From sequence record MW760841.1: a stretch of DNA of 64,000 nt; one strand, written 5' to 3'. This document shows, piece after piece, positions 419 to 7,354 of this stretch. Both the position numbers and the translations under genes were made by a program. The notes under the pieces are model-generated. The model saw only the letters and a list, made by a program, of their open reading frames with translations. It did no database searches and was not told the DNA's origin. Numbering within the stretch: position 1 is the stretch's first letter; each line of letters starts with the position of its first letter.

Positions 419-925
419 ATGACCACGATTGCTTACGACGGCGAAACGCTGTCGTCCGATAGCCAGGTGACCCAGGCTCAGTATCGCCTGGATGTCAACA
501 CGCCTAAAATCTTCGAACCCGGTGAAACCGAGTCGTGGGTTGTCGAGGGTGTGAACGCTGTAGCGTTTGGTGTCGCTGGCCCACTTGAAGCTCAGCAGGT
601 TGTTCGTAGCGTACTCGCCGGTTTTGGTTCTACCTGCGGCGTTACCACGGCAACGGCTTGGCCGAAGGGCATCTCGATGAGTTTTATTATCATCGACGAG
701 AACGGCGGTGTTTACACCGGTGGTCAGGAACCCGATGCTGAAAGAGGTTGGTTGGCGAAAGTCAAACCACCGATGGCGGTTGGTAGCGGTTGTGAATTCG
801 CACTCGGTGCGATGTTTGCAGGTGCGCCATCGGCTGTCGCGGTGATGTCAGCCATCCGTTACGACGTGAATACTGGTGGTGGTGTTCAAACCATTCAACC
901 ACGCAGAAGTCCAATTACAGATTAA
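419..925 (+). CDS. HslV/proteasome-beta-like Ntn-hydrolase (putative threonine protease)
   Basis: N-terminal MTTIAYDG..SDSQ.T, a Lys near position 30, GSG motif and C-terminal D..TGG; RBS GGAGG. Confidence 0.75.
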   Translation: MTTIAYDGETLSSDSQVTQAQYRLDVNTPKIFEPGETESWVVEGVNAVAFGVAGPLEAQQVVRSVLAGFGSTCGVTTATAWPKGISMSFIIIDENGGVYTGGQEPDAERGWLAKVKPPMAVGSGCEFALGAMFAGAPSAVAVMSAIRYDVNTGGGVQTIQPRRSPITD

Positions 926-973
926 CCTAGTGTTATGCTGAGAGGCGCACGACGGTTTCTCTGAAAGAATTTT

Positions 974-1049
974 GGGGGTATAGTTCAATTGGCAGAATGT
1001 CGGTCTCCAAAACCGAAGGTTCGAGGTTCGAGACCTCGTGCCCCCGCCA
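974..1049 (+). tRNA. tRNA-Trp(CCA)
   Basis: Cloverleaf; acceptor GGGGGTA/TGCCCCC, anticodon loop CTCCAAA, encoded CCA end. Confidence 0.95.
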
Positions 1050-1115
1050 AATTTAGCCAACAGGGACATGATTCACCGCAACGTGACAAGATACGTCAAT
1101 TAGCGGAGAACGACC

Positions 1116-1340
1116 ATGAACTTGTATTTGCTGGAAAGACAGGATGATGTTGACTACGACGAGTTTGATTCCATAATCGTCGCTGCTCCTACGGAGCAAG
1201 CTGCGCGCGCAATTCGTCCCTCGGGAAGTGGCTGGGTACCAGAAGACAAAGTCGATGACGGTGAATTCCTGAGAGTTGTCATGATTGGTACTACAGACCG
1301 AGGAGAAGGCATCGTCCATGAATCTTTCTGTGCAGGCTGA
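1116..1340 (+). CDS. Small acidic hypothetical protein between two tRNAs
   Basis: 74-aa ORF with RBS GGAG and protein-like composition. Confidence 0.7.
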   Translation: MNLYLLERQDDVDYDEFDSIIVAAPTEQAARAIRPSGSGWVPEDKVDDGEFLRVVMIGTTDRGEGIVHESFCAG

Positions 1341-1368
1341 ATAAACGGCGGACTACGGTTCGCCAACT

Positions 1369-1444
1369 GGGGTGATGGTCCGAGTGGTTAGGCGTTGGAT
1401 TGCAAATCCAAATCAGTCCGGTTCAAATCCGGTTCACCCCTCCA
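1369..1444 (+). tRNA. tRNA-Cys(GCA)
   Basis: Acceptor GGGGTGA/TCACCCC, U73, loop TTGCAAA, CCA end. Confidence 0.95.
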
Positions 1445-1456
1445 AACTTTTTAAAA

Positions 1457-1576
1457 CACATCTCGCCCGATGTGACAACTTTACAACAAACCCGTAGAGC
1501 CTTTCGGGGGTGTGGCTAGTAGGAGTGATTGTTCACTCTACGGTCTTTCACTCCTGGGCGCTGGCTCACCCACCTA
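1457..1576 (+). promoter_or_regulatory. Structured, pseudoknot-capable leader upstream of terB
   Basis: Hairpin 1457-1474; crossing 8-bp helices 1492-1499/1536-1543 and 1521-1528/1548-1555. Confidence 0.4.
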
Positions 1577-1591
1577 AAGGAAAATTTGCAA

Positions 1592-2017
1592 ATGTTTAGT
1601 ATCTTCAAAAAACGCGCTAACCGTGCTATGGCCGACATCAAAAAATTCGACAAACGCGATCTGGCAGAAGCCGTTGTTAACGCAGCGTACCTGATTGCCT
1701 ACGCCGATGGCGAACTGGAATCTTCTGAGAAATCCAAAATCGACCAGGTACTGCGTGCTAACCCTGTGCTGTCTAACTTCCAGGGTGAACTGAACCAGAT
1801 CGCGGGCACTATCATCGCCCAGCTGGAAGCAGACATCGATATCGGTCGTCGTGCTGCTCTGCGTCAGATTGCTGATGTGAAAGGCGACCAGCGCGAATGT
1901 GAAGACGTCCTGGACGTTGCAGTGGCTATCGCTCGTGCTGATGGTGAAATCGAACCGGCCGAAGTCAAAATGCTGGAGCAAATCGCCGAAGCTCTTGGCC
2001 TGCGCTACGACGCGTAA
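1592..2017 (+). CDS. terB: TerB-family (tellurite-resistance/stress-response) protein
   Basis: Motifs AYLIAYADGELESSEK and AVAIARADGEIEPAEVKMLEQIAEALGL; ATG 1592 after AAGGA. Confidence 0.85.
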   Translation: MFSIFKKRANRAMADIKKFDKRDLAEAVVNAAYLIAYADGELESSEKSKIDQVLRANPVLSNFQGELNQIAGTIIAQLEADIDIGRRAALRQIADVKGDQRECEDVLDVAVAIARADGEIEPAEVKMLEQIAEALGLRYDA

Positions 2018-2020
2018 TCC

Positions 2021-2200
2021 ATGAAGCTGAAAACCAAGTTATACATCGCGGCCGCACTGATTCTGATGCTGCTTGGCAACTTCATAGGCCGAGCGTTTAC
2101 GTTCATCGCCTATGCAGCTGTAATCAGCTTAGTAGCATACTTCGTGTGGCCACTCATTAAGACCTACGCTGCCAAGGCAAAAGCCAAGGTCAAGTCTTAG
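2021..2200 (+). CDS. 59-aa membrane protein with about two TM segments (absent from the ORF track)
   Basis: Translated by hand: MKLKTKLYIAAALILMLLGNFIGRAFTFIAYAAVISLVAYFVWPLIKTYAAKAKAKVKS*. Confidence 0.75.
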   Translation: MKLKTKLYIAAALILMLLGNFIGRAFTFIAYAAVISLVAYFVWPLIKTYAAKAKAKVKS

Positions 2201-2210
2201 TGAGTTTAGT

Positions 2211-2230
2211 GGGGAGGTCGTTCCCTCCCC
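2211..2230 (+). other. Intergenic GC hairpin (stabiliser or weak terminator)
   Basis: GGGGAGG-TCGTTC-CCTCCCC with no T-run. Confidence 0.4.
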
Positions 2231-2266
2231 ATTGTTCCATTCTCTTAAACAATAACAGGTACAAGC

Positions 2267-3100
2267 ATGAGAAAGGTTCTGATTGGTTTATTCGCTGCGC
2301 TGAGCTTCTCAGCGATGGCAGGGCAGGATGTTGTCATTACCACTGGGCAACAAGGACTGACGTACAACTCAGTCTACGGCACCAACCTGGCAGGGGCGCT
2401 GAATGAGTTCGGCAATACTGCACGCGTTATCCCTTCGAAGGGGTCTTCGGACAACCTCGATAAAGTTTCCAGCGGTGAAGCCCAACTTGGGTTCACGCAA
2501 GCTGATGCCTTCCAGTATTGGCGTCAGCAACATCCGAACGAAGCACAGAAGGTTGACATCGTTGGTCAGCTGGGACGTGAATGCGTTTGGGTAGCCGTCA
2601 AGAAAGGCGGTAAGATTAGCGAAGCCAAAGACCTGACCAACGGCGCGAAGATTGCCGTCGGTGACCCGGACTCTGGTTCCTACGCCAGCTGGCAATACCT
2701 CCAGCTTTTGGTAAAAGAATACTCGAAAGCGGAAACCTACGCGAAGGGTGGCATTCGTTCTCTGTCCAAAGTGGCGACAGGGGAATACGATGCGTTCCTG
2801 TGGGTATCGGCTCCGGGCAAAAGTAATAAATTCCTCGATGCCGTCAATCAAGACAGTTCTGGCTTGGAACTGATTGACATGAGCACTTGGAGCGTTAACG
2901 ACAAACTGCCTAACGGCCAGTCTGTTTACACCAAAGAGAAAGTAGAGACCAACTCTGCGGCATTCTTCGGTGCGAAGGTTGACGTCCCATGCACCACTAC
3001 GCTGGTTGTGGCTAACACAGACGCGGGTGACGACATGCTCGAAACGGTATCGTCTATCCTCCTCAAGAACACTTCTCGTGTGATGGGGACGAAACAATAA
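2267..3100 (+). CDS. TAXI-family TRAP solute-binding protein (secreted)
   Basis: Signal peptide MRKVLIGLFAALSFSAMA; ITTGQQGLTY, SKGSSDNL, LGFTQAD and VGDPDSGS motifs typical of TAXI receptors. Confidence 0.8.
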   Translation: MRKVLIGLFAALSFSAMAGQDVVITTGQQGLTYNSVYGTNLAGALNEFGNTARVIPSKGSSDNLDKVSSGEAQLGFTQADAFQYWRQQHPNEAQKVDIVGQLGRECVWVAVKKGGKISEAKDLTNGAKIAVGDPDSGSYASWQYLQLLVKEYSKAETYAKGGIRSLSKVATGEYDAFLWVSAPGKSNKFLDAVNQDSSGLELIDMSTWSVNDKLPNGQSVYTKEKVETNSAAFFGAKVDVPCTTTLVVANTDAGDDMLETVSSILLKNTSRVMGTKQ

Positions 3101-3868
3101 CTGGCTGAGGGTTGATTCTGACCCACGACCTGTACCAACCTACTTGAACGGGCTGGTATCCCGTTTGATGCGGTAATAGCAGAGACCCAGTGCACACCCG
3201 TAAGTCGCTGGTAGCCGGTTACACAAAGCACTATCCGTTAGGGTAGGTAACTGACCGTACATGAACTTACTCGATGAGAGAGCCCTTATATATGCAAGGA
3301 CTTAGAGAGTTGGTGCGTGGGCTCATTCGTTCCATACGGGACATCTGGGCTTTCGCTCGACATTGGTCACTTGCTCATTACTGGCTTACAGGCGGTGGGA
3401 AGTCCCGTGAGGGTTCCCGATACAGACATCTTCCTGCGTGGAATTATATGTCCTTATCGGACAGGCCAGCACCGGACCGCTAACCCGACCTGCTAACGCC
3501 TGTAATACTACAATCTGATGTCCATTAATGGGATTAAGTTCCCAGTGTGATAGAGCGACTGTGTGTCGCTGGAGATAACCCCCCGTCGTGGACTAGGTTA
3601 TCCCAAAGGTAATGTGAAAGCGGGTGGTGCTTGGAGAGGTTCAGACCGGGGGATACTCTGGCTCAACCGAAGAAGTCCATCACCCGCATTCTCACTTCAA
3701 AAGTCCTTTTACAGATTTATCCCTATATATGCGAAAGATAACAAAGCGAATTCTAACGAATGAGTTTTCTTTGTTATATGTCGGGGAATCTCGTTGTTGC
3801 TGCACAGGGCGTTGCGTTGCGTACGCTTGCCGGTGTGTAGGAGTTGCGAGGTGCCCTGGCACCTATAC
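3101..3868 (+). ncRNA. Candidate large structured non-coding RNA (unassigned)
   Basis: No convincing ORF; nested long-range helices (e.g. 3339-3345/3517-3523, 3386-3394/3497-3505, 3620-3629/3678-3687) and a GTGA tetraloop; strand and ends are inferred. Confidence 0.55.
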
Positions 3869-3950
3869 GGGGGAGTGGCGGAGCGGTCGAACGCGGCAGA
3901 CTGTAAATCTGTTATCCCACACGGTGGTTCAAATCCATCCTCCCCCACCA
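3869..3950 (+). tRNA. tRNA-Tyr(GTA)
   Basis: Acceptor GGGGGAG/CTCCCCC, loop CTGTAAA, CCA; short 10-nt variable region. Confidence 0.9.
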
Positions 3951-3954
3951 CTTT

Positions 3955-4029
3955 AGGGGTATAGCCAAGCGGTAAGGCCCAGGGCTTTGATCCCTGTATG
4001 CCCTGGTTCAAATCCAGGTGCCCCTTCCA
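3955..4029 (+). tRNA. tRNA-Gln(TTG)
   Basis: Loop CTTTGAT, Gln-type D arm, CCA; A1-U72 and U73. Confidence 0.9.
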
Positions 4030-4036
4030 TTACGTT

Positions 4037-4114
4037 GCACCTGTAGCTCAGATTGGTCAGAGCACGAGTTTGAAAAACTCGGGGTCGCTGGTTCGAGACC
4101 AGCTGGGTGCACCA
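4037..4114 (+). tRNA. tRNA-Phe(GAA)
   Basis: Stem CGAGT/ACTCG, loop TTGAAAA, CCA. Confidence 0.92.
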
Positions 4115-4120
4115 TTTTGA

Positions 4121-4197
4121 TGTCTCGTAGCTCAGTTGGTCAGAGCGCGCCCCTGATAAGGGCGAGGTCAGTGGTTCAAATCCACTCGAGACAACCA
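4121..4197 (+). tRNA. tRNA-Ile(GAT)
   Basis: Acceptor TGTCTCG/CGAGACA, loop CTGATAA, CCA. Confidence 0.95.
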
Positions 4198-4203
4198 ATT
4201 TCC

Positions 4204-4290
4204 GCCGGGGCGGTGAAATTGGTAGATACATGGGATTTAAAATCCCCCGGCGTTCGCGTCGTGCGGGTTCGAGTCCCGCCCCCGGCACCA
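4204..4290 (+). tRNA. tRNA-Leu(TAA)
   Basis: Type II cloverleaf, loop TTTAAAA, CCA. Confidence 0.93.
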
Positions 4291-4294
4291 ATTC

Positions 4295-4370
4295 GGTTCT
4301 GTAGCTCAGTCGGTAGAGCACGCCACTCATAATGGCGCGGTCGTTGGTTCGATACCAGCCGGAACCACCA
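4295..4370 (+). tRNA. tRNA with CAT anticodon (elongator Met or Ile2; not initiator)
   Basis: Loop CTCATAA, G1-C72 paired, no triple G-C anticodon stem, CCA. Confidence 0.9.
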
Positions 4371-4494
4371 GTCACGAGAACGTAACCCTGCGGTTTGGTT
4401 AGTCACCTATACTAGCGGTTACGCGATGCCCTTATCTGCGGGGTGTGATATAGTGCGAGGGGTAGACTCTCTCAAGCAAGCAGACGCAAATTCT

Positions 4495-4570
4495 TCTCCC
4501 GTCATCTAGCGGTCCAGGATACCGGCCTTTCACGTCGGGCACACGAGTTCAAATCTCGTCGGGAGAACCA
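4495..4570 (+). tRNA. tRNA-Glu(TTC)
   Basis: Acceptor TCTCCCG/CGGGAGA, loop CTTTCAC, CCA. Confidence 0.93.
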
Positions 4571-4576
4571 AATTAG

Positions 4577-4740
4577 CAGGAGAGCTTTAGGGGTTCGTTT
4601 TCAGACGCCTAGGTTGTGGAACGTTGCATCCCGCGTCAAGCCGGATGTAATTGGGGTTCGACTCCCCACTAGGATGCCCTAAAGGTAGCGCCGTCACAGG
4701 CGAGCAACTAACACGAGGCGTCATTACACGCCTACTCCTG
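4577..4740 (+). ncRNA. Candidate ~165-nt ncRNA with an embedded tRNA-like domain
   Basis: Outer helices 4577-4582/4735-4740 and 4585-4592/4677-4684; perfect T-arm 4652-4668; two extra hairpins. Confidence 0.6.
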
Positions 4741-4749
4741 AATAACTGT

Positions 4750-4826
4750 AGTGCCGTAGTCGAGCTGGTTAAGACGCCTGCCTGTCACGTAGGAGATCGT
4801 GGGTTCAAGTCCCATCGGCACTGCCA
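4750..4826 (+). tRNA. tRNA-Asp(GTC)
   Basis: Acceptor AGTGCCG/CGGCACT, loop CTGTCAC, G73, CCA. Confidence 0.93.
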
Positions 4827-4902
4827 TATTTTCACGGACCTTATCAGCCGCCAACTGATATCATCTTAGAGCGATAAAGCCGGGTGGTGAATGGTGTATT
4901 AC

Positions 4903-4992
4903 GGAGAATTGACTGAGAGGCTGAAGGTGCTCCCCTGCTAAGGGAGTGTATGCGAAAGTGTACCATTGGTTCGAAACCAATATTCTCCGCCA
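4903..4992 (+). tRNA. tRNA-Ser(GCT)
   Basis: Type II, acceptor GGAGAAT/ATTCTCC, loop CTGCTAA, G73, CCA. Confidence 0.95.
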
Positions 4993-5101
4993 AACAATGA
5001 ACGTGGCCTTCCCAACGTAATTGCACATGAGCCCGAGGGCAACACTGTCTTTGCAAGTAAGAATCAGTCCTGCCTTTGATGGCGAGCGTTCACCCTACAA
5101 T

Positions 5102-5167
5102 GGTTTCTCCCGGTCGGTCCGGGGTCGTCCGTAATAGACGAGGTTGGTTCAAATCCAGCAGAAACAA
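5102..5167 (+). ncRNA. Compact tRNA-like cloverleaf with a non-canonical anticodon loop and no CCA
   Basis: GTTTCT/AGAAAC, CCCGG/CCGGG, TCGTC/GACGA, T-arm GTTGG-TTCAAAT-CCAGC. Confidence 0.55.
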
Positions 5168-5267
5168 GAACGATGAAGTTAGAGGCATAAACACCCGACT
5201 CATAATCGGATAGTGGTTTACCCGGCGGGTACTCCTTCGCAGGTTCGAATCCTGCCTTCGTTCGCCC
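5168..5267 (+). tRNA. Atypical tRNA-like gene with CAT loop, 28-nt variable region and no encoded CCA
   Basis: Acceptor GAACGATG/CTTCGTTC (one T.T mismatch), loop CTCATAA, T-arm GCAGG-TTCGAAT-CCTGC, ends GCCC. Confidence 0.55.
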
Positions 5268-5273
5268 TTTTTT

Positions 5274-5349
5274 GATTCCATAGCTCAGTTGGTAGAGCGG
5301 CGTCCCGTTAAGTCGTAGGTCCCAGGTTCGAGCCCTGGTGGAATCGCCA
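5274..5349 (+). tRNA. tRNA-Asn(GTT) with an atypical anticodon arm
   Basis: Acceptor GATTCCA/TGGAATC, G73, CCA; loop CCGTTAA (C33) and a T.T mismatch in the stem. Confidence 0.85.
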
Positions 5350-5617
5350 CATTTTGTATTGCCCTTGTCCCGGAGACATTCCTAAGACAAATCCATCCAT
5401 GGTCGGGGGCAGTACAGAACCAAATTCCGGACATCACACCTTTTGTCGCCACCTGCATGGCTGCCTCCGGGGTGTGATGGCTGGAACCATCTTTACCCGT
5501 TTGTTTTTTTCTTTCAATCAATTAAGCCTGGTGGAAAGGTTGACCAATGGACGGGTAGAGCCCTAGCGGGGGATAAGCCGCTAACAACAATAGAAACAGA
5601 AATAGAAGGAAAGCACC

Positions 5618-6127
5618 ATGTTTACAGTTCAACGTATCGTTAAAGGTACCCGCTGCCCTATCGACCTGGAAGAACCGGCGCTTGGCGACCGTGACTCCGA
5701 TGTCTTTAAGGAAGCCATGAAACTGGCACAGGAATCCATTGACACGCAGAGCGAAGCAGTCATGGACATGAACCTGGCCGATGCCCGAGAAATTATCGGG
5801 ATGCAGGAGAAGTTCAATTCTCCTGAAGGCGTGGATGAAGAAACCGCAAACGCCTTGTGTCAAGAATTTACCGCAGTGGACTTAGAGTTCCATTACGATG
5901 ACTCCAAACCGGAAGAGCAACCCCAGCAGGCAGTCCTGTTAGGTTCTCGTCCTGGCACGCGTTCTCTGGACGAAGCCATTGGGGTGTTGTCGTATGCACT
6001 TGAAGACCGCCGTGACCCGGAGAAACCGGAAACGTACGTGCAAGCGTGTCGTTACGAGTTCTTCTATCCAGGGGACCAAGTCTACGTAACCAACCGTTAC
6101 GGTAAGACCGTCGATTCCCTGCGTTAA
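5618..6127 (+). CDS. Hypothetical protein
   Basis: 169-aa ORF, RBS AAGGA; C-terminal VYVTNRYGKTV resembles a motif common in small phage proteins. Confidence 0.8.
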   Translation: MFTVQRIVKGTRCPIDLEEPALGDRDSDVFKEAMKLAQESIDTQSEAVMDMNLADAREIIGMQEKFNSPEGVDEETANALCQEFTAVDLEFHYDDSKPEEQPQQAVLLGSRPGTRSLDEAIGVLSYALEDRRDPEKPETYVQACRYEFFYPGDQVYVTNRYGKTVDSLR

Positions 6128-6223
6128 CAGAATCAACCCGCTCGTTGATATCGATGTTGTTGGAGCCACCCACTCCTGCCTGAAACCGACATCATGCAGT
6201 ACCCTTCGAAAGCCGACATGCCT

Positions 6224-6270
6224 GGTACCCCCTACCCCTTTCGGGGTAGGGACGTATCCTATATTTTTTT
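6224..6270 (+). terminator. Probable intrinsic terminator
   Basis: CCCTACCCC-TTTC-GGGGTAGGG hairpin with a T-run a short distance downstream. Confidence 0.55.
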
Positions 6271-6272
6271 GG

Positions 6273-6291
6273 ATATATATCATTTAGGTGA
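6273..6291 (+). promoter_or_regulatory. Degenerate copy of the phage early-promoter-like motif
   Basis: ATATATATCATTTAGGTGA upstream of 6341. Confidence 0.4.
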
Positions 6292-6340
6292 GATTACAAT
6301 TCCGTAATCAAATGCCTACAGCCTATCAAGGAGTTCTATT

Positions 6341-7354
6341 ATGTCAGCAGTTATCGCAGCCTCAGCCATCGGCACCCTGATGTCTTTCGGTTATACCGAA
6401 CTCGAAGCTAAGCGTATCCGTTCTTTCTTACCACGTCGCTTCCAGACCTTCGGACAACCGTTACCACCGACCAACATCGACGCATGGTTAATCTACCGTG
6501 CCGTTAAGCATTACCTGTTGTGCACCAATGAGCGCGGTGTATTCAAACCGTATGCGGGCACCAGTGGCTATCTCTCCATGCAATCCACCGAGACCATGGT
6601 GTACGTGACCAATAAGGAAAAGATTAGTTTCAGCACAGTAGAGTTCGTACGTCACTTCGGTGACGCGTTCTATACTGACATGAATGAGCAGGAAGGTAAG
6701 CGCATCGTCCGTATGAATCAGGATGGCTCCTTCGTGGTTAAGAACCGTCGACTGGAACAACTGTTCCGTGAGATGGAACAACGTGCTAATCGTCCAGAAG
6801 GTCCAGGCTGTCACACCAATCCGTACATGAGCGCCAATACGGGAGCATTCTACTTACCGGTGGATGAAACCTACAGCGCCAGTGATATCTTCGCCATGTA
6901 CACCCATGGGGCATTGGCCACGGAATACGTCCAGGATCAGAACTTCCGTAAGGTAATGTTATCCGGGGTTGATTTCCACATCGTGGCGAAGTACCTGTAC
7001 TTCCTGTACTGCGAGAAACTGAAAGGTGAACCACATGGTGAACATTTCGAAGCCATACGTTTCACCATCACCCGGACTCTGGACAGTCGTTTCGTAGATG
7101 GGTTCACTTACTACCCGCACCGTCGTGGCAATGCGATTTACTTTGCAGACCAAACCGCACTGACACCTAACGGGCTGGTGCCGGTTGTGCCAATGCAGTT
7201 GATGATGAACTCTGTCCCGGTCAATTATTACTCACATGGCTTCATGGTACGTTTCAGTCTCAACGGCCACATGGAATCCTCACCGAGCATTCCACTGTCA
7301 GTGAAAAAGTATTTCACTCTTGAAGAGTGGGCTACTGCATTGAACAAACAATAA
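6341..7354 (+). CDS. Hypothetical protein
   Basis: 337-aa ORF, RBS AAGGAG, followed by a terminator. Confidence 0.85.
   Translation: MSAVIAASAIGTLMSFGYTELEAKRIRSFLPRRFQTFGQPLPPTNIDAWLIYRAVKHYLLCTNERGVFKPYAGTSGYLSMQSTETMVYVTNKEKISFSTVEFVRHFGDAFYTDMNEQEGKRIVRMNQDGSFVVKNRRLEQLFREMEQRANRPEGPGCHTNPYMSANTGAFYLPVDETYSASDIFAMYTHGALATEYVQDQNFRKVMLSGVDFHIVAKYLYFLYCEKLKGEPHGEHFEAIRFTITRTLDSRFVDGFTYYPHRRGNAIYFADQTALTPNGLVPVVPMQLMMNSVPVNYYSHGFMVRFSLNGHMESSPSIPLSVKKYFTLEEWATALNKQ

Follow-up and report, generated by a model that had tools for sequence, protein, structure and literature searches.

Stable RNAs other than tRNAs are known from the tRNA cluster of phage T4, where the small species 1 and species 2 RNAs (rnaC and rnaD), of unknown function, are encoded on the same strand as the tRNAs and a few nt from a neighbouring tRNA. 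ROOL and GOLLD are large ornate RNAs (~500-800 nt) of phages and prophages, 'often near tRNA islands', and their function is likewise unknown (PMC12286853). YrlA, which also occurs in some phages, carries on its 5'/3'-end stem a tRNA-like domain with T- and D-arm features, and its motif GNCGAA(N0-1)G near the 5' end is a candidate Ro-binding site (PMC4201824).

Here we analyzed a 64,000-nt window of record MW760841.1, from Erwinia phage pEa_SNUABM_4 (Machinavirus), and found a tRNA island at positions 3101-5617. The phage belongs to the Chimalliviridae, as the initial annotation had assumed. The island contains 10 canonical tRNAs and one tRNA(CAU) with an extra arm, and all its elements, including those described below, lie in one orientation on the + strand. 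ARAGORN called 10 tRNAs on this strand between 3869 and 5349, and Rfam added the eleventh at 5169-5263 (39 bits vs. a threshold of 29); the RF00005 gathering threshold (29 bits) was reached by these 11 genes only. Six tRNAs (Tyr-GTA, Gln-TTG, Phe-GAA, Ile-GAT, Leu-TAA and Met-CAT) are packed at 3869-4370 with gaps of 4-7 nt, followed by tRNA-Glu (TTC, 4495-4570), tRNA-Asp (GTC, 4750-4826), tRNA-Ser (GCT, 4903-4992) and tRNA-Asn (GTT, 5274-5349), these four being found by both ARAGORN and Rfam. Each of the 10 canonical tRNAs, the packed six included, encodes its CCA, as expected for genes which host enzymes mature. tRNA sets vary even between close relatives. No tmRNA was called by ARAGORN at default, and at the 80% threshold there were only spurious low-score calls over tRNAs. 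The division of the spacers into tiny and large ones was confirmed, with short spacers of 4, 7, 6, 6, 4 and 10 nt (4-10 nt) and large ones of 768, 124, 179, 76, 176 and 268 nt (76-768 nt).

Folding of the large spacers was analyzed one by one as MFE z-scores against dinucleotide shuffles, and covariation was taken as a better test of structure than folding energy. The z-scores were +0.6 (Met-Glu), -2.8 (Glu-Asp), +0.3 (Asp-Ser), -1.4 (Ser to 5168), -3.4 (Asn to the next CDS) and -4.2 (the leader 3701-3868, ahead of tRNA-Tyr). The earlier suggestion that each large spacer folds held, by covariation, for the regions ahead of tRNA-Tyr, between Glu and Asp, in the 3' part of Ser-Asn and between Asn and the CDS, and failed for 4371-4494 and 4827-4902. 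Likewise, the proposed comparison of pairing across relatives revealed compensatory changes in several elements and no signal in these two spacers. Taken together, the alignments indicate that selection keeps several non-tRNA RNA elements folded beside the 11 tRNA genes of this chimallivirus island, and the view of structured RNAs interleaved with tRNA genes in the same orientation is borne out by conserved, covarying elements. Three of these conserved non-tRNA RNAs carry tRNA-like modules, and none of the non-tRNA elements matched an Rfam family (Rfam 15).

The largest element, at 3144-3700 ahead of tRNA-Tyr, is a composite of ~560 nt, in which a conserved ORF of 63 codons lies between a 5' multi-helix domain and a 3' domain. 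It is common to Machina-, Erskine- and Seoulvirus, its distribution is confined to SPN3US-like chimalliviruses of enterobacteria, and the three parts occur together in 9/9 true metagenome members. The 5' domain (3144-3291) contains a hairpin with a conserved 7-nt loop (3144-3168), a long-range helix (3170-3174 / 3254-3258) and three further hairpins: one whose loop, GCAYACCNNUAAGYC, is conserved, one of variable length, and a small one that overlaps the SD-like run 5' of the ORF. In an alignment of 17 sequences from 3 genera plus IMG/VR contigs (A3), 95.1% of the cells of its 31 pairs were paired and 21 pairs had changes on both sides, giving a covariation score of 0.558 compared to 0.20 for shuffled and 0.06-0.08 for slid alignments. 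The MFE z-score of the 5' domain is unremarkable (-0.3) despite this covariation. The 3' domain (3468-3700) begins with an invariant hairpin (3468-3494) that holds the ORF stop codon in its loop, and continues with hairpins at 3529-3544 and 3554-3570 (loop UGUGU), a swappable hairpin at 3571-3602 and a long hairpin at 3614-3695 with invariant purine-rich internal loops (GGAG / GAAGAAG). For this domain, an alignment of 18 sequences (A7) gave 43 pairs that were 98.4% paired, with both-side changes in 15, and a score of 0.280 vs. 0.115 shuffled and 0.03-0.08 slid. The G-U pairs in both domains are compatible with the + strand only.

The ORF at 3292-3483 encodes an Arg/Trp-rich product with the motif W-x-L-x-H-Y-W-L-T-G-x-G and a conserved C-terminus (..APxx-stop). 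The GenBank record of the phage has no CDS between 3100 and 5618, in agreement with the initial claim that the island holds no credible protein gene, but this conserved ORF argues against that claim, as it is probably a small protein gene judging from its pattern of conservation. It is open in every lineage examined (55-64 codons), is preceded by an SD-like purine run and differs between relatives mostly at codon position 3 and least at position 2. The annotations of ChrisDB, Machina, Parshik, pSal-SNUABM-04, SNUABM_43, SNUABM_10 and Asesino list it as a hypothetical protein, and it matches the profile phrog_26199, whose members are predictions only (E = 4e-7 for the window ORF, 1e-49 for the Parshik ORF). 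Only 6 protein clusters in 5.8 billion correspond to the product, each of them from this phage group.

The start codon of the ORF is the ATG of a motif, YTATATATGCRA, at 3286-3297. This motif includes TATG, the core of phiKZ late promoters, T(-3)ATG(+1) (PMC7598289), and by analogy we infer that it could act as a promoter here. A second copy lies at 3723-3734, which in the Machina clade is just upstream of an inserted ParB-like ORF that is missing in pEa_SNUABM_4, and TATATATG occurs only twice within the 64 kb, at the first copy and at 3724. TATG-containing motifs at 3287, 3724 and 3779 could begin separate transcripts.

RNA and coding constraints overlap in the ORF, and either could be secondary. 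GNRA-capped hairpins in its 3' half covary through compensatory stems (alignments A1 and A4), and their loops are retained across E/K swaps of the encoded residue (A1, A4 and translations). These charge-reversing swaps within the frame could mean that the 560-nt element is an RNA-only ornate ncRNA of the ROOL/GOLLD kind, in which the frame is incidental or secondary. The size of the element, its setting in a phage tRNA island and its many covarying helices with invariant loops agree with such an RNA, as does a small protein without relatives outside the composite element. Moreover, the start codon lies within the TATG motif, at whose G phiKZ transcription starts, and in Machinavirus the GCAAG right after the ATG can, from our reading of the alignment, pair with CUUGC ~75 nt downstream. 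Nevertheless, we consider an RNA without a coding role improbable, as no stop interrupts the frame between the ATG and the shared TAA in ~8 diverged lineages with unalignable N-terminal halves, which in non-coding sequence would by a rough estimate have a chance of ~1e-3 or less. Length changes also preserve the frame, the codon-position bias and the SD-like run point to translation, and the Rfam ROOL and GOLLD models had no match at E up to 10, either in 600-6400 or in 3101-3868.

Alternatively, the element may be a cis-regulatory leader whose 5' domain is a riboswitch or protein-binding operator of the small ORF, with translation of the ORF setting the 3' fold and thereby read-through into the tRNA array. 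The hairpin over the SD-like run, the stop codon inside the loop of the invariant hairpin and the conserved C-terminal ..AP-x-x-stop agree with such a leader, and the element is always located upstream of tRNA-Tyr (in Erskinevirus upstream of tRNA-Gly and then Tyr). We find this reading doubtful, since 55-64 codons is long for a leader peptide and there is no terminator-like hairpin with a U-run beyond the 3' domain. Furthermore, the Machina clade has retained the element although the ParB-like gene is inserted between it and the tRNAs, and SPN3US has kept it with its tRNA array almost gone. We favour a 560-nt element that is most likely a highly structured mRNA, whose small basic peptide and RNA domains would act jointly, in a cis-regulated unit or a ribonucleoprotein. 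Between this element and tRNA-Tyr, the leader at 3701-3868 forms three hairpins conserved in Machinavirus, including 3738-3777 and a GGTGCC/GGCACC stem just 5' of tRNA-Tyr.

The Glu-Asp spacer contains an RNA of ~160 nt (4580-4738), defined by a family alignment and covariation, with a tRNA-like domain embedded at 4607-4678. Its helices include P1 (GAGAG / CUACUC), P2 (8 bp) and a small hairpin, P3. The tRNA-like core consists of an acceptor stem, a D-like GGUUGUGGAAC, a variable arm and a T-arm with GGGGUUCGACUCCCC, after which come P4, a single-stranded AACUAACAC and P5. The domain has no free CCA end, and the stand-in for its anticodon loop varies among members in both sequence and length. 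We found the family in Machinavirus, Seoulvirus SNUABM_29, Moabitevirus 2050HW, the Ounavirinae phage Arno162, Mimasvirus CBB and IMG/VR contigs. Across 9 lineages 290/297 helix cells are paired, and P2 covaries at five of its eight positions. In the other phages the RNA lies at unrelated genome positions, and 3/12 lineages have no tRNAs nearby. The best Rfam match to 4580-4738 was mascRNA, at 24 bits and below threshold.

In the Ser-Asn region, a block of 36 nt (5060-5096) is ~91% identical in all Machinavirus genomes while the flanks diverge. It is followed by a miniature tRNA-like element of 64 nt (5102-5165), 3 nt upstream of tRNA(CAU), whose MFE fold is a cloverleaf with a 6-bp acceptor stem, a 5-bp stem with loop UCGGU replacing the D-arm, a 5-bp stem with a variable 6-8-nt loop and a canonical T-arm, CCA being missing. 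Compensatory changes in Stratton and SNUABM_29 support the acceptor and T stems, while the variable loop is unconserved. The top Rfam match was tRNA-Sec (17 bits, below threshold); RF00005 gave no match at E up to 10 for either 4607-4678 or 5102-5165, and ARAGORN called both mimics at the 80% threshold only. The adjacent tRNA(CAU), at 5169-5263, has an extra arm of ~23 nt and no encoded CCA, and is Met(cat) according to ARAGORN in intron mode. Its ortholog in relatives is the tRNA-Met/Ile2(CAT) ahead of tRNA-Asn, and its anticodon arm is 100% identical to that of their tRNA-Met(cat). SNUABM_9, ChrisDB and SNUABM_6 have the insert as well, and Caitlin, Stratton and SNUABM_29 lack it.

Three conserved tRNA-like modules in a single island of a chimallivirus raise the possibility of a coordinated counter-defence, in which cargo RNAs and tRNA mimics serve as decoys or sponges for PrrC, RloC, PARIS, retron-PtuAB or Cas13; this would matter since the phage shell hides DNA and not cytoplasmic RNA. 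In line with this, unrelated phages of Erwinia, Serratia and Pectobacterium share 75-86% identity in the ~160-nt family, whose core pattern had no exact match in 185,579 bacterial and archaeal genomes, a pattern of horizontal exchange typical of accessory or anti-defence genes. However, the loops that replace the anticodon loop vary in sequence and length, which argues against mimicry of a specific anticodon-nuclease target, and modules without a conserved anticodon loop would be poor decoys for anticodon nucleases. The lack of a free CCA end in the ~160-nt RNA, the presence of its family in Ounavirinae and Mimasvirus, and thus not in chimalliviruses specifically, the two spacers resembling plain spacer and the probable small protein gene within the largest 'cargo' also weigh against this explanation, which we regard as unlikely.

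The remaining large spacers, Met-Glu (4371-4494) and Asp-Ser (4827-4902), gave no structure signal by z-score or covariation and no tRNA similarity. The former is conserved in close relatives only (92-98% in SNUABM_9 and ChrisDB, 72% in part of pSal-SNUABM-04). The latter is a 76-nt insertion that the relatives' maps show to be specific to pEa_SNUABM_4, the gap in close relatives being 3-5 nt. Both look like plain spacer left by fast turnover of tRNA genes. It is conceivable that all spacers are decaying tRNA genes and recombination scars without a function of their own, as the rapid change in tRNA content among close relatives and these two regions, without structure or deep conservation and one of them unique to this phage, might suggest. 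As a general explanation this is very unlikely, since across genera and families the ~160-nt RNA, the miniature tRNA-like element and the composite element retain their stems through compensatory changes, where decaying genes would lose pairing. Decay was on these grounds rejected for the conserved elements, and it stands only for 4371-4494 and 4827-4902.

The trailer (5352-5583) has a conserved hairpin immediately 3' of tRNA-Asn (5352-5420), a variable hairpin (5428-5488) with a U-run after it (5500-5516), and a hairpin at 5564-5583 upstream of the ribosome-binding region of the next gene. In 9 Machinavirus genomes 14 of its 55 predicted pairs had both-side changes. The location of the island near the conventional genome start and the repeated TATATATGC motif could instead point to conserved blocks that serve as signals in the DNA, for example an origin of replication, a packaging site or promoters. 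This is extremely improbable for blocks in which many conserved G-U pairs would turn into A-C mismatches on the opposite strand, in which GNRA and T-loop motifs are features of RNA, and of which the ~160-nt family is found at unrelated genome positions in other phages.

Our proposal, to which we give about an even chance, is that the island consists of tRNA genes and folded RNAs made as one or a few precursors and processed at the tRNAs, with the 560-nt element as a structured mRNA. The unremarkable z-scores of some covarying parts, the TATG motifs at which separate transcripts could begin, the overlapping constraints in the ORF and the lineages whose ~160-nt RNA has no tRNAs nearby weigh against it. 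Phage RNA polymerases would transcribe the island into a single long + strand precursor or a few of them; inside it, the only host-type promoter or terminator match on the + strand is a false one within tRNA-Asn. Host RNase P and 3' processing would then cleave the precursors at the tRNAs, probably also at the tRNA-like modules, so that the intervening pieces could persist as stable folded RNAs in the manner of the T4 species 1 and 2 RNAs. We infer such co-transcription and RNase P punctuation by analogy with T4; a further precedent is the chimallivirus 201phi2-1, where an sRNA derived from a 5'UTR is located immediately 5' of a tRNA (PMC11512511). Wastewater runs containing the region represent DNA of a ChrisDB-like relative. 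Without a conserved anticodon loop the tRNA-like modules would not decode, and they are most likely handles for tRNA-binding enzymes, in processing, stabilisation or titration.

Annotations of phage tRNA islands usually show tRNAs and 'nothing' else, and the 'nothing' of this island includes at least two RNA families with strong covariation and no entry in Rfam 15. The ~160-nt family is common to chimalliviruses and to FelixO1-like and Rak2-like phages of plant-associated enterobacteria, which suggests that the function of this RNA is portable. SPN3US-like nucleus-forming phages have the 560-nt element as a conserved landmark, and it is directly testable, since SPN3US is a genetic model. Hypothetical CDSs drawn over these RNAs in several relatives are in need of correction. 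A more far-reaching interpretation, to which we assign a low probability, is that the ~160-nt RNA is a new class of horizontally exchanged phage ncRNA that titrates a tRNA-binding host factor, the 560-nt element a new large RNA or peptide-RNA particle of chimalliviruses, and the island an RNA-based locus for host takeover or counter-defence. The titrated factor may then be a processing enzyme, or a defence nuclease recognising the tRNA elbow or acceptor and not the anticodon.

Compared to canonical tRNAs (RF00005), the tRNA-like modules have the cloverleaf, T-arm and acceptor stem in common, whereas 4607-4678 and 5102-5165 differ by non-canonical D regions, unconserved 'anticodon' loops and the lack of CCA. 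The ~160-nt RNA and YrlA are both modular, with an end stem and a tRNA-like domain in which a true anticodon arm is missing. Unlike YrlA, the ~160-nt RNA has no GNCGAA(N)G motif and its 5' end is GAGAGCUUUAGGGG in all members; the YrlA model RF02553 had no match at 4580-4738, with sub-threshold matches on true tRNAs only, and no TROVE domain was found among the scanned neighbours of several family members.

Like the T4 RNAs, the non-tRNA elements lie within a phage tRNA cluster, in the orientation of the tRNAs, and rnaC, with paired ends beside a canonical T-arm, is a partial tRNA mimic as they are. The comparison of rnaC and rnaD with the island returned T-loop words only (best E = 0.06), without homology in sequence or structure, and the helix layout differs. 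In contrast to the T4 RNAs, the ~160-nt RNA has an internal tRNA-like domain clamped by two outer helices, and T4 has no counterpart of the 560-nt element with its ORF. That element resembles ROOL and GOLLD in size class, tRNA-island setting and many covarying helices, and differs from them in its conserved, probably translated ORF and in its restriction to SPN3US-like enterobacterial chimalliviruses. The two RNAs carry both the problem of the T4 species 1 and 2 RNAs and the ROOL/GOLLD puzzle into new lineages.

The window sequence is identical to that of Erwinia phage pEa_SNUABM_4 (MW812338) and of pEa_SNUABM_8, and window coordinates are genome coordinates. The initial annotation had assumed a nucleus-forming phage, and this is borne out since the genus, Machinavirus, is assigned to Chimalliviridae. 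Upstream of the main tRNA island lie tRNA-Trp (CCA) and tRNA-Cys (GCA) (974-1444), with a small CDS between the two and further CDSs before the island, a layout kept across three genera. Immediately upstream (1592-2200), one gene encodes a TerB-domain protein and another a small TciB-like one (phrog_1470); next comes a TAXI/NMT1-like solute-binding-protein gene (2267-3100). The latter is absent from phage ChrisDB and a ChrisDB-like wastewater relative, where 2199 is joined to 3150, and the RNA element that opens the island is therefore an independent module.

ARAGORN placed ten tRNAs on the + strand at 3869-5349. Rfam agreed on all ten and added an eleventh at 5169-5263 (39 bits, threshold 29), which lacks the encoded CCA that all ten canonical tRNAs carry. 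The deposited annotation holds no CDS between 3100 and 5618. A gap of 768 nt precedes tRNA-Tyr, then come gaps of 4, 7, 6, 6 and 4 nt, followed by 124, 179, 76, 176 and 10 nt, and a final gap of 268 nt leads up to the next CDS. The tiny and large spacer classes noticed earlier are real (4-10 nt vs 76-768 nt). Each large spacer had also been said to fold into closed stems, which is true only in part because the folding energy z-scores against dinucleotide shuffles were mixed. They were negative for the Glu-Asp spacer (-2.8), the stretch from tRNA-Asn to the CDS (-3.4) and the leader 3701-3868 (-4.2), and slightly positive for the Met-Glu (+0.6) and Asp-Ser (+0.3) spacers; the region from tRNA-Ser to 5168 gave -1.4, and control CDS segments ranged from -0.2 to -1.7. 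Rfam was searched with the whole window, with the island and with each spacer alone, at gathering and at permissive thresholds (E up to 10), and returned tRNAs only; weak matches to mascRNA, Tymo-TLS, tRNA-Sec and YrlA reflect no more than tRNA-likeness.

The most conserved non-tRNA part of the island is 3101-3868, where a composite element of about 560 nt (3144-3700) stands ahead of tRNA-Tyr. BLAST found 3183-3737 at ~70% identity in every Machinavirus genome, while Seoulvirus (SPN3US and relatives) keeps a 240-nt core (3450-3691) and Erskinevirus a 67-nt core; the records of relatives in these three genera mostly leave the region unannotated. Alignments revealed near-invariant blocks and, between them, stems with both sides changing together, and whole hairpins have been exchanged between lineages. 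In the 5' domain (3144-3291, + strand) the 31 pairs are 95.1% paired over 17 sequences, with both-side changes in 21 of them and a covariation score of 0.558, as compared to 0.20 for shuffled alignments and 0.06-0.08 when partners were displaced by one to three columns. The 3' domain (3468-3700, + strand) has 43 pairs, 98.4% paired over 18 sequences, 15 of which show both-side changes, and its score of 0.280 compares with 0.115 (shuffled) and 0.03-0.08 (displaced). In both domains G-U pairs are frequent, conserved and compatible with the + strand only, and an RNA is therefore favoured over a DNA signal. In the long hairpin at 3614-3695 the internal loops are rich in purines and do not vary (GGAG facing GAAGAAG), which suggests a binding site.

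No Rfam family, ROOL and GOLLD included, matched the element even at E = 10, and a check for host origin among 5,426 E. coli genomes gave no match. A metagenome scan returned 21 matches, 12 by chance and nine true, and all nine true members combine the 5' domain motif, a small ORF and the 3' hairpin. A wider family for the 3' hairpin was rejected: a loose pattern hit 112 viral loci, and a covariance model of 16 members turned down 100 out of 100 tested. In the wastewater relative, the stretch 3258-3364, which starts where the 5' domain ends and covers the first third of the ORF, gives way to 103 unrelated letters, almost as many as it replaces, between conserved flanks; this is a hypervariable segment of constant length. 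T4 rnaD (locus L142:2554-2672, - strand) has ACCGGUAAGUCGUCGG, which resembles the conserved 5'-domain loop ACCCGUAAGUCGCUGG (3185-3215); the likeness covers only ~10 nt and may be a chance match.

Between the two domains lies the small ORF itself (3292-3483, + strand, 63 codons), and here the earlier statement that the island has no credible protein gene fails. The frame is open from ATG to the same TAA, over 55-64 codons, in all lineages compared (two Machinavirus clades, an IMG/VR outlier, two Erskinevirus clades and Seoulvirus), and a purine run stands 7-13 nt upstream. The N-terminal halves are unalignable between clades, yet stop-free in all, and the C-terminal ..APxx-stop motif and a W-x-L-x-H-Y-W-L-T-G block are retained. 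Summed over four independent pairs of close relatives, differences at codon positions 1, 2 and 3 number 28, 19 and 41, so that the third position differs most and the second least. The product matches phrog_26199, is annotated as a hypothetical protein in several relatives, and in a profile search of 5.8 billion proteins was confined to the same phage group. Constraints on the RNA cross the same frame: a GNRA-capped hairpin within it has compensatory stems across lineages (CCC-GUGA-GGG, CUC-GUGA-GAG, CCC-GUAA-GGG and GGAC-GAGA/GCAA-GUCC), the residue encoded there alternates between Glu and Lys, and an invariant hairpin carries the stop codon in its loop. Such pairing would also suit an element that is RNA only, with the reading frame incidental, and we keep this as a rival explanation, to be set against the frame open in all lineages and its codon bias. 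Since the ORF is conserved and RNA constraints cross it, we take the element to be a structured mRNA, or else a unit that combines a peptide with RNA.

The motif TATATATG, which includes TATG, has just two copies in the 64 kb: one where the ORF starts and one at 3724. In phiKZ, late promoters have TATG as their core and transcription starts at its G (PMC7598289), and by this shared core the motif is a candidate promoter. No usable motif for phage promoters emerged from a scan for host-type promoters or from k-mers enriched upstream of genes. In the Machina clade the 3' domain and the tRNA-Tyr leader are set apart by an inserted 109-aa ParB-like ORF (phrog_17560), immediately downstream of the second TATATATGC motif (window 3737-3763; L006:2058-2390, L008:2058-2390 and L007:2066-2392 in related phages); it is absent from pEa_SNUABM_4 and its closest relatives.

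The Glu-Asp spacer contains a 160-nt RNA (4580-4738, + strand) that belongs to a wider family, with 75-86% identity to unannotated DNA of unrelated phages. Matches were found in Seoulvirus pEa_SNUABM_29 and in Serratia and Pectobacterium Moabitevirus phages, and partial ones in FelixO1-like Pectobacterium phages, Rak2-like CBB, Citrobacter phage Tr1 and Erwinia phage KEY. The pattern of the conserved 3' part occurs in ten IMG/VR contigs and was not found in any of 185,579 bacterial and archaeal genomes. All members share one architecture: paired ends (P1), an 8-bp P2, a small variable hairpin, and next a tRNA-like domain, internal to the RNA, that comprises an acceptor stem, a canonical T-arm and either a D-arm or a D-like element; in this domain a variable arm of 20-140 nt replaces the anticodon arm. 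Past the 3' strand of P2 follow a P4 hairpin with a bulged A, single-stranded AA-N-UAACAC and a final hairpin, P5. Standard pairs fill 290 of the 297 helix cells across nine lineages; P2 is perfect in seven distinct sequence versions and covaries at five of its eight positions, and covariation is also seen in P4, the T stem and P1. The element is in or beside tRNA clusters in nine lineages out of twelve and has no tRNA nearby in the other three, and neighbouring ORFs in four lineages had no common domain that would point to a shared protein partner. In CBB and a related IMG/VR contig (L131:1295-1367 and L137:29-103) the RNA directly follows a tRNA with anticodon CTA ('Pyl' per ARAGORN), possibly an amber suppressor. 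In SNUABM_9 (L002:4414-4551, - strand, and L002:4983-5237) and in another relative (L006:3411-3707), annotated hypothetical CDSs overlap or adjoin the 160-nt RNA and a miniature tRNA-like element; at least the pair in SNUABM_9, which cover covarying RNA, are probably spurious.

This miniature element (5102-5165, + strand) folds into a 64-nt cloverleaf that lacks a canonical D-arm, and its anticodon-loop stand-in varies in sequence and length. As compensatory changes are seen in the acceptor stem and the T stem of its counterparts in Stratton (Erskinevirus) and SNUABM_29 (Seoulvirus), the alignments mark it as a maintained RNA rather than a decaying gene. Only 3 nt separate it from the eleventh tRNA (5169-5263, + strand), a tRNA(CAU) orthologous to the relatives' tRNA-Met/Ile2(CAT) that precedes tRNA-Asn; its ~23-nt extra arm is common to SNUABM_9, ChrisDB and SNUABM_6 and absent in Caitlin, Stratton and SNUABM_29. 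All Machinavirus genomes keep a 36-nt block (5060-5096) at ~91% identity, between flanks that both diverge. The trailer (5350-5617), conserved in Machinavirus, has 55 predicted pairs, 14 of them compensatory, with a long hairpin directly 3' of tRNA-Asn and another hairpin followed by a U-run.

Other spacers are plain. The Met-Glu spacer (4371-4494) is conserved in close relatives only and carries no structure signal, and the Asp-Ser spacer (4827-4902) is an insertion unique to pEa_SNUABM_4, Asp and Ser being 3-5 nt apart in relatives. Neither resembles any of 145 tRNAs of relatives; BLAST of each spacer against these, as a search for dead tRNAs, gave T-loop words only, besides the true ortholog at 5169-5263, and an origin of the Asp-Ser spacer from Parshik tRNA-Glu was dropped as the alignment is not credible. 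The set and order of tRNAs vary even between close relatives (window 3869-5349, related loci L002-L015), with His, a second Glu, a second Asp, Ser-TGA, Gly-CCC, Phe and Leu gained or lost, which indicates fast turnover of tRNA genes, and for this reason such plain spacers are probably scars of that turnover.

Taken together, our results show that the non-tRNA elements exist and are kept as + strand folds, and that three of them imitate parts of tRNA. Considering the common strand, the tiny gaps, the lack of host-type signals inside the island and the T4 precedent, these elements would be co-transcribed with the tRNAs and may then be released by RNase P and 3' processing. Searches of sequencing runs and read mapping yielded only tRNA words and DNA of the ChrisDB-like relative, in wastewater libraries labelled RNA-Seq. 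The tRNA-like modules have no conserved anticodon loops, and it is therefore unlikely that they decode or that they mimic one particular target of an anticodon nuclease; it is plausible that they engage enzymes reading the acceptor, T-arm or elbow. What the initial annotation observed thus holds in part, for the spacer size classes but not for folding of all large spacers or the lack of a protein gene, and its interpretation has partial support.

The island may be likened to the T4 tRNA cluster, which includes two stable RNAs, and ROOL and GOLLD occur in a similar setting (PMC12286853); by model or homology its elements are members of none of these families. The 160-nt RNA differs from YrlA, as the GNCGAA motif is absent and the Rfam YrlA model gives no match there. 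The parts that chiefly merit follow-up are the 560-nt composite element and the 160-nt family, built around a tRNA-like core, and in our reading the RNAs of the island are new families in a type of locus that is already known.
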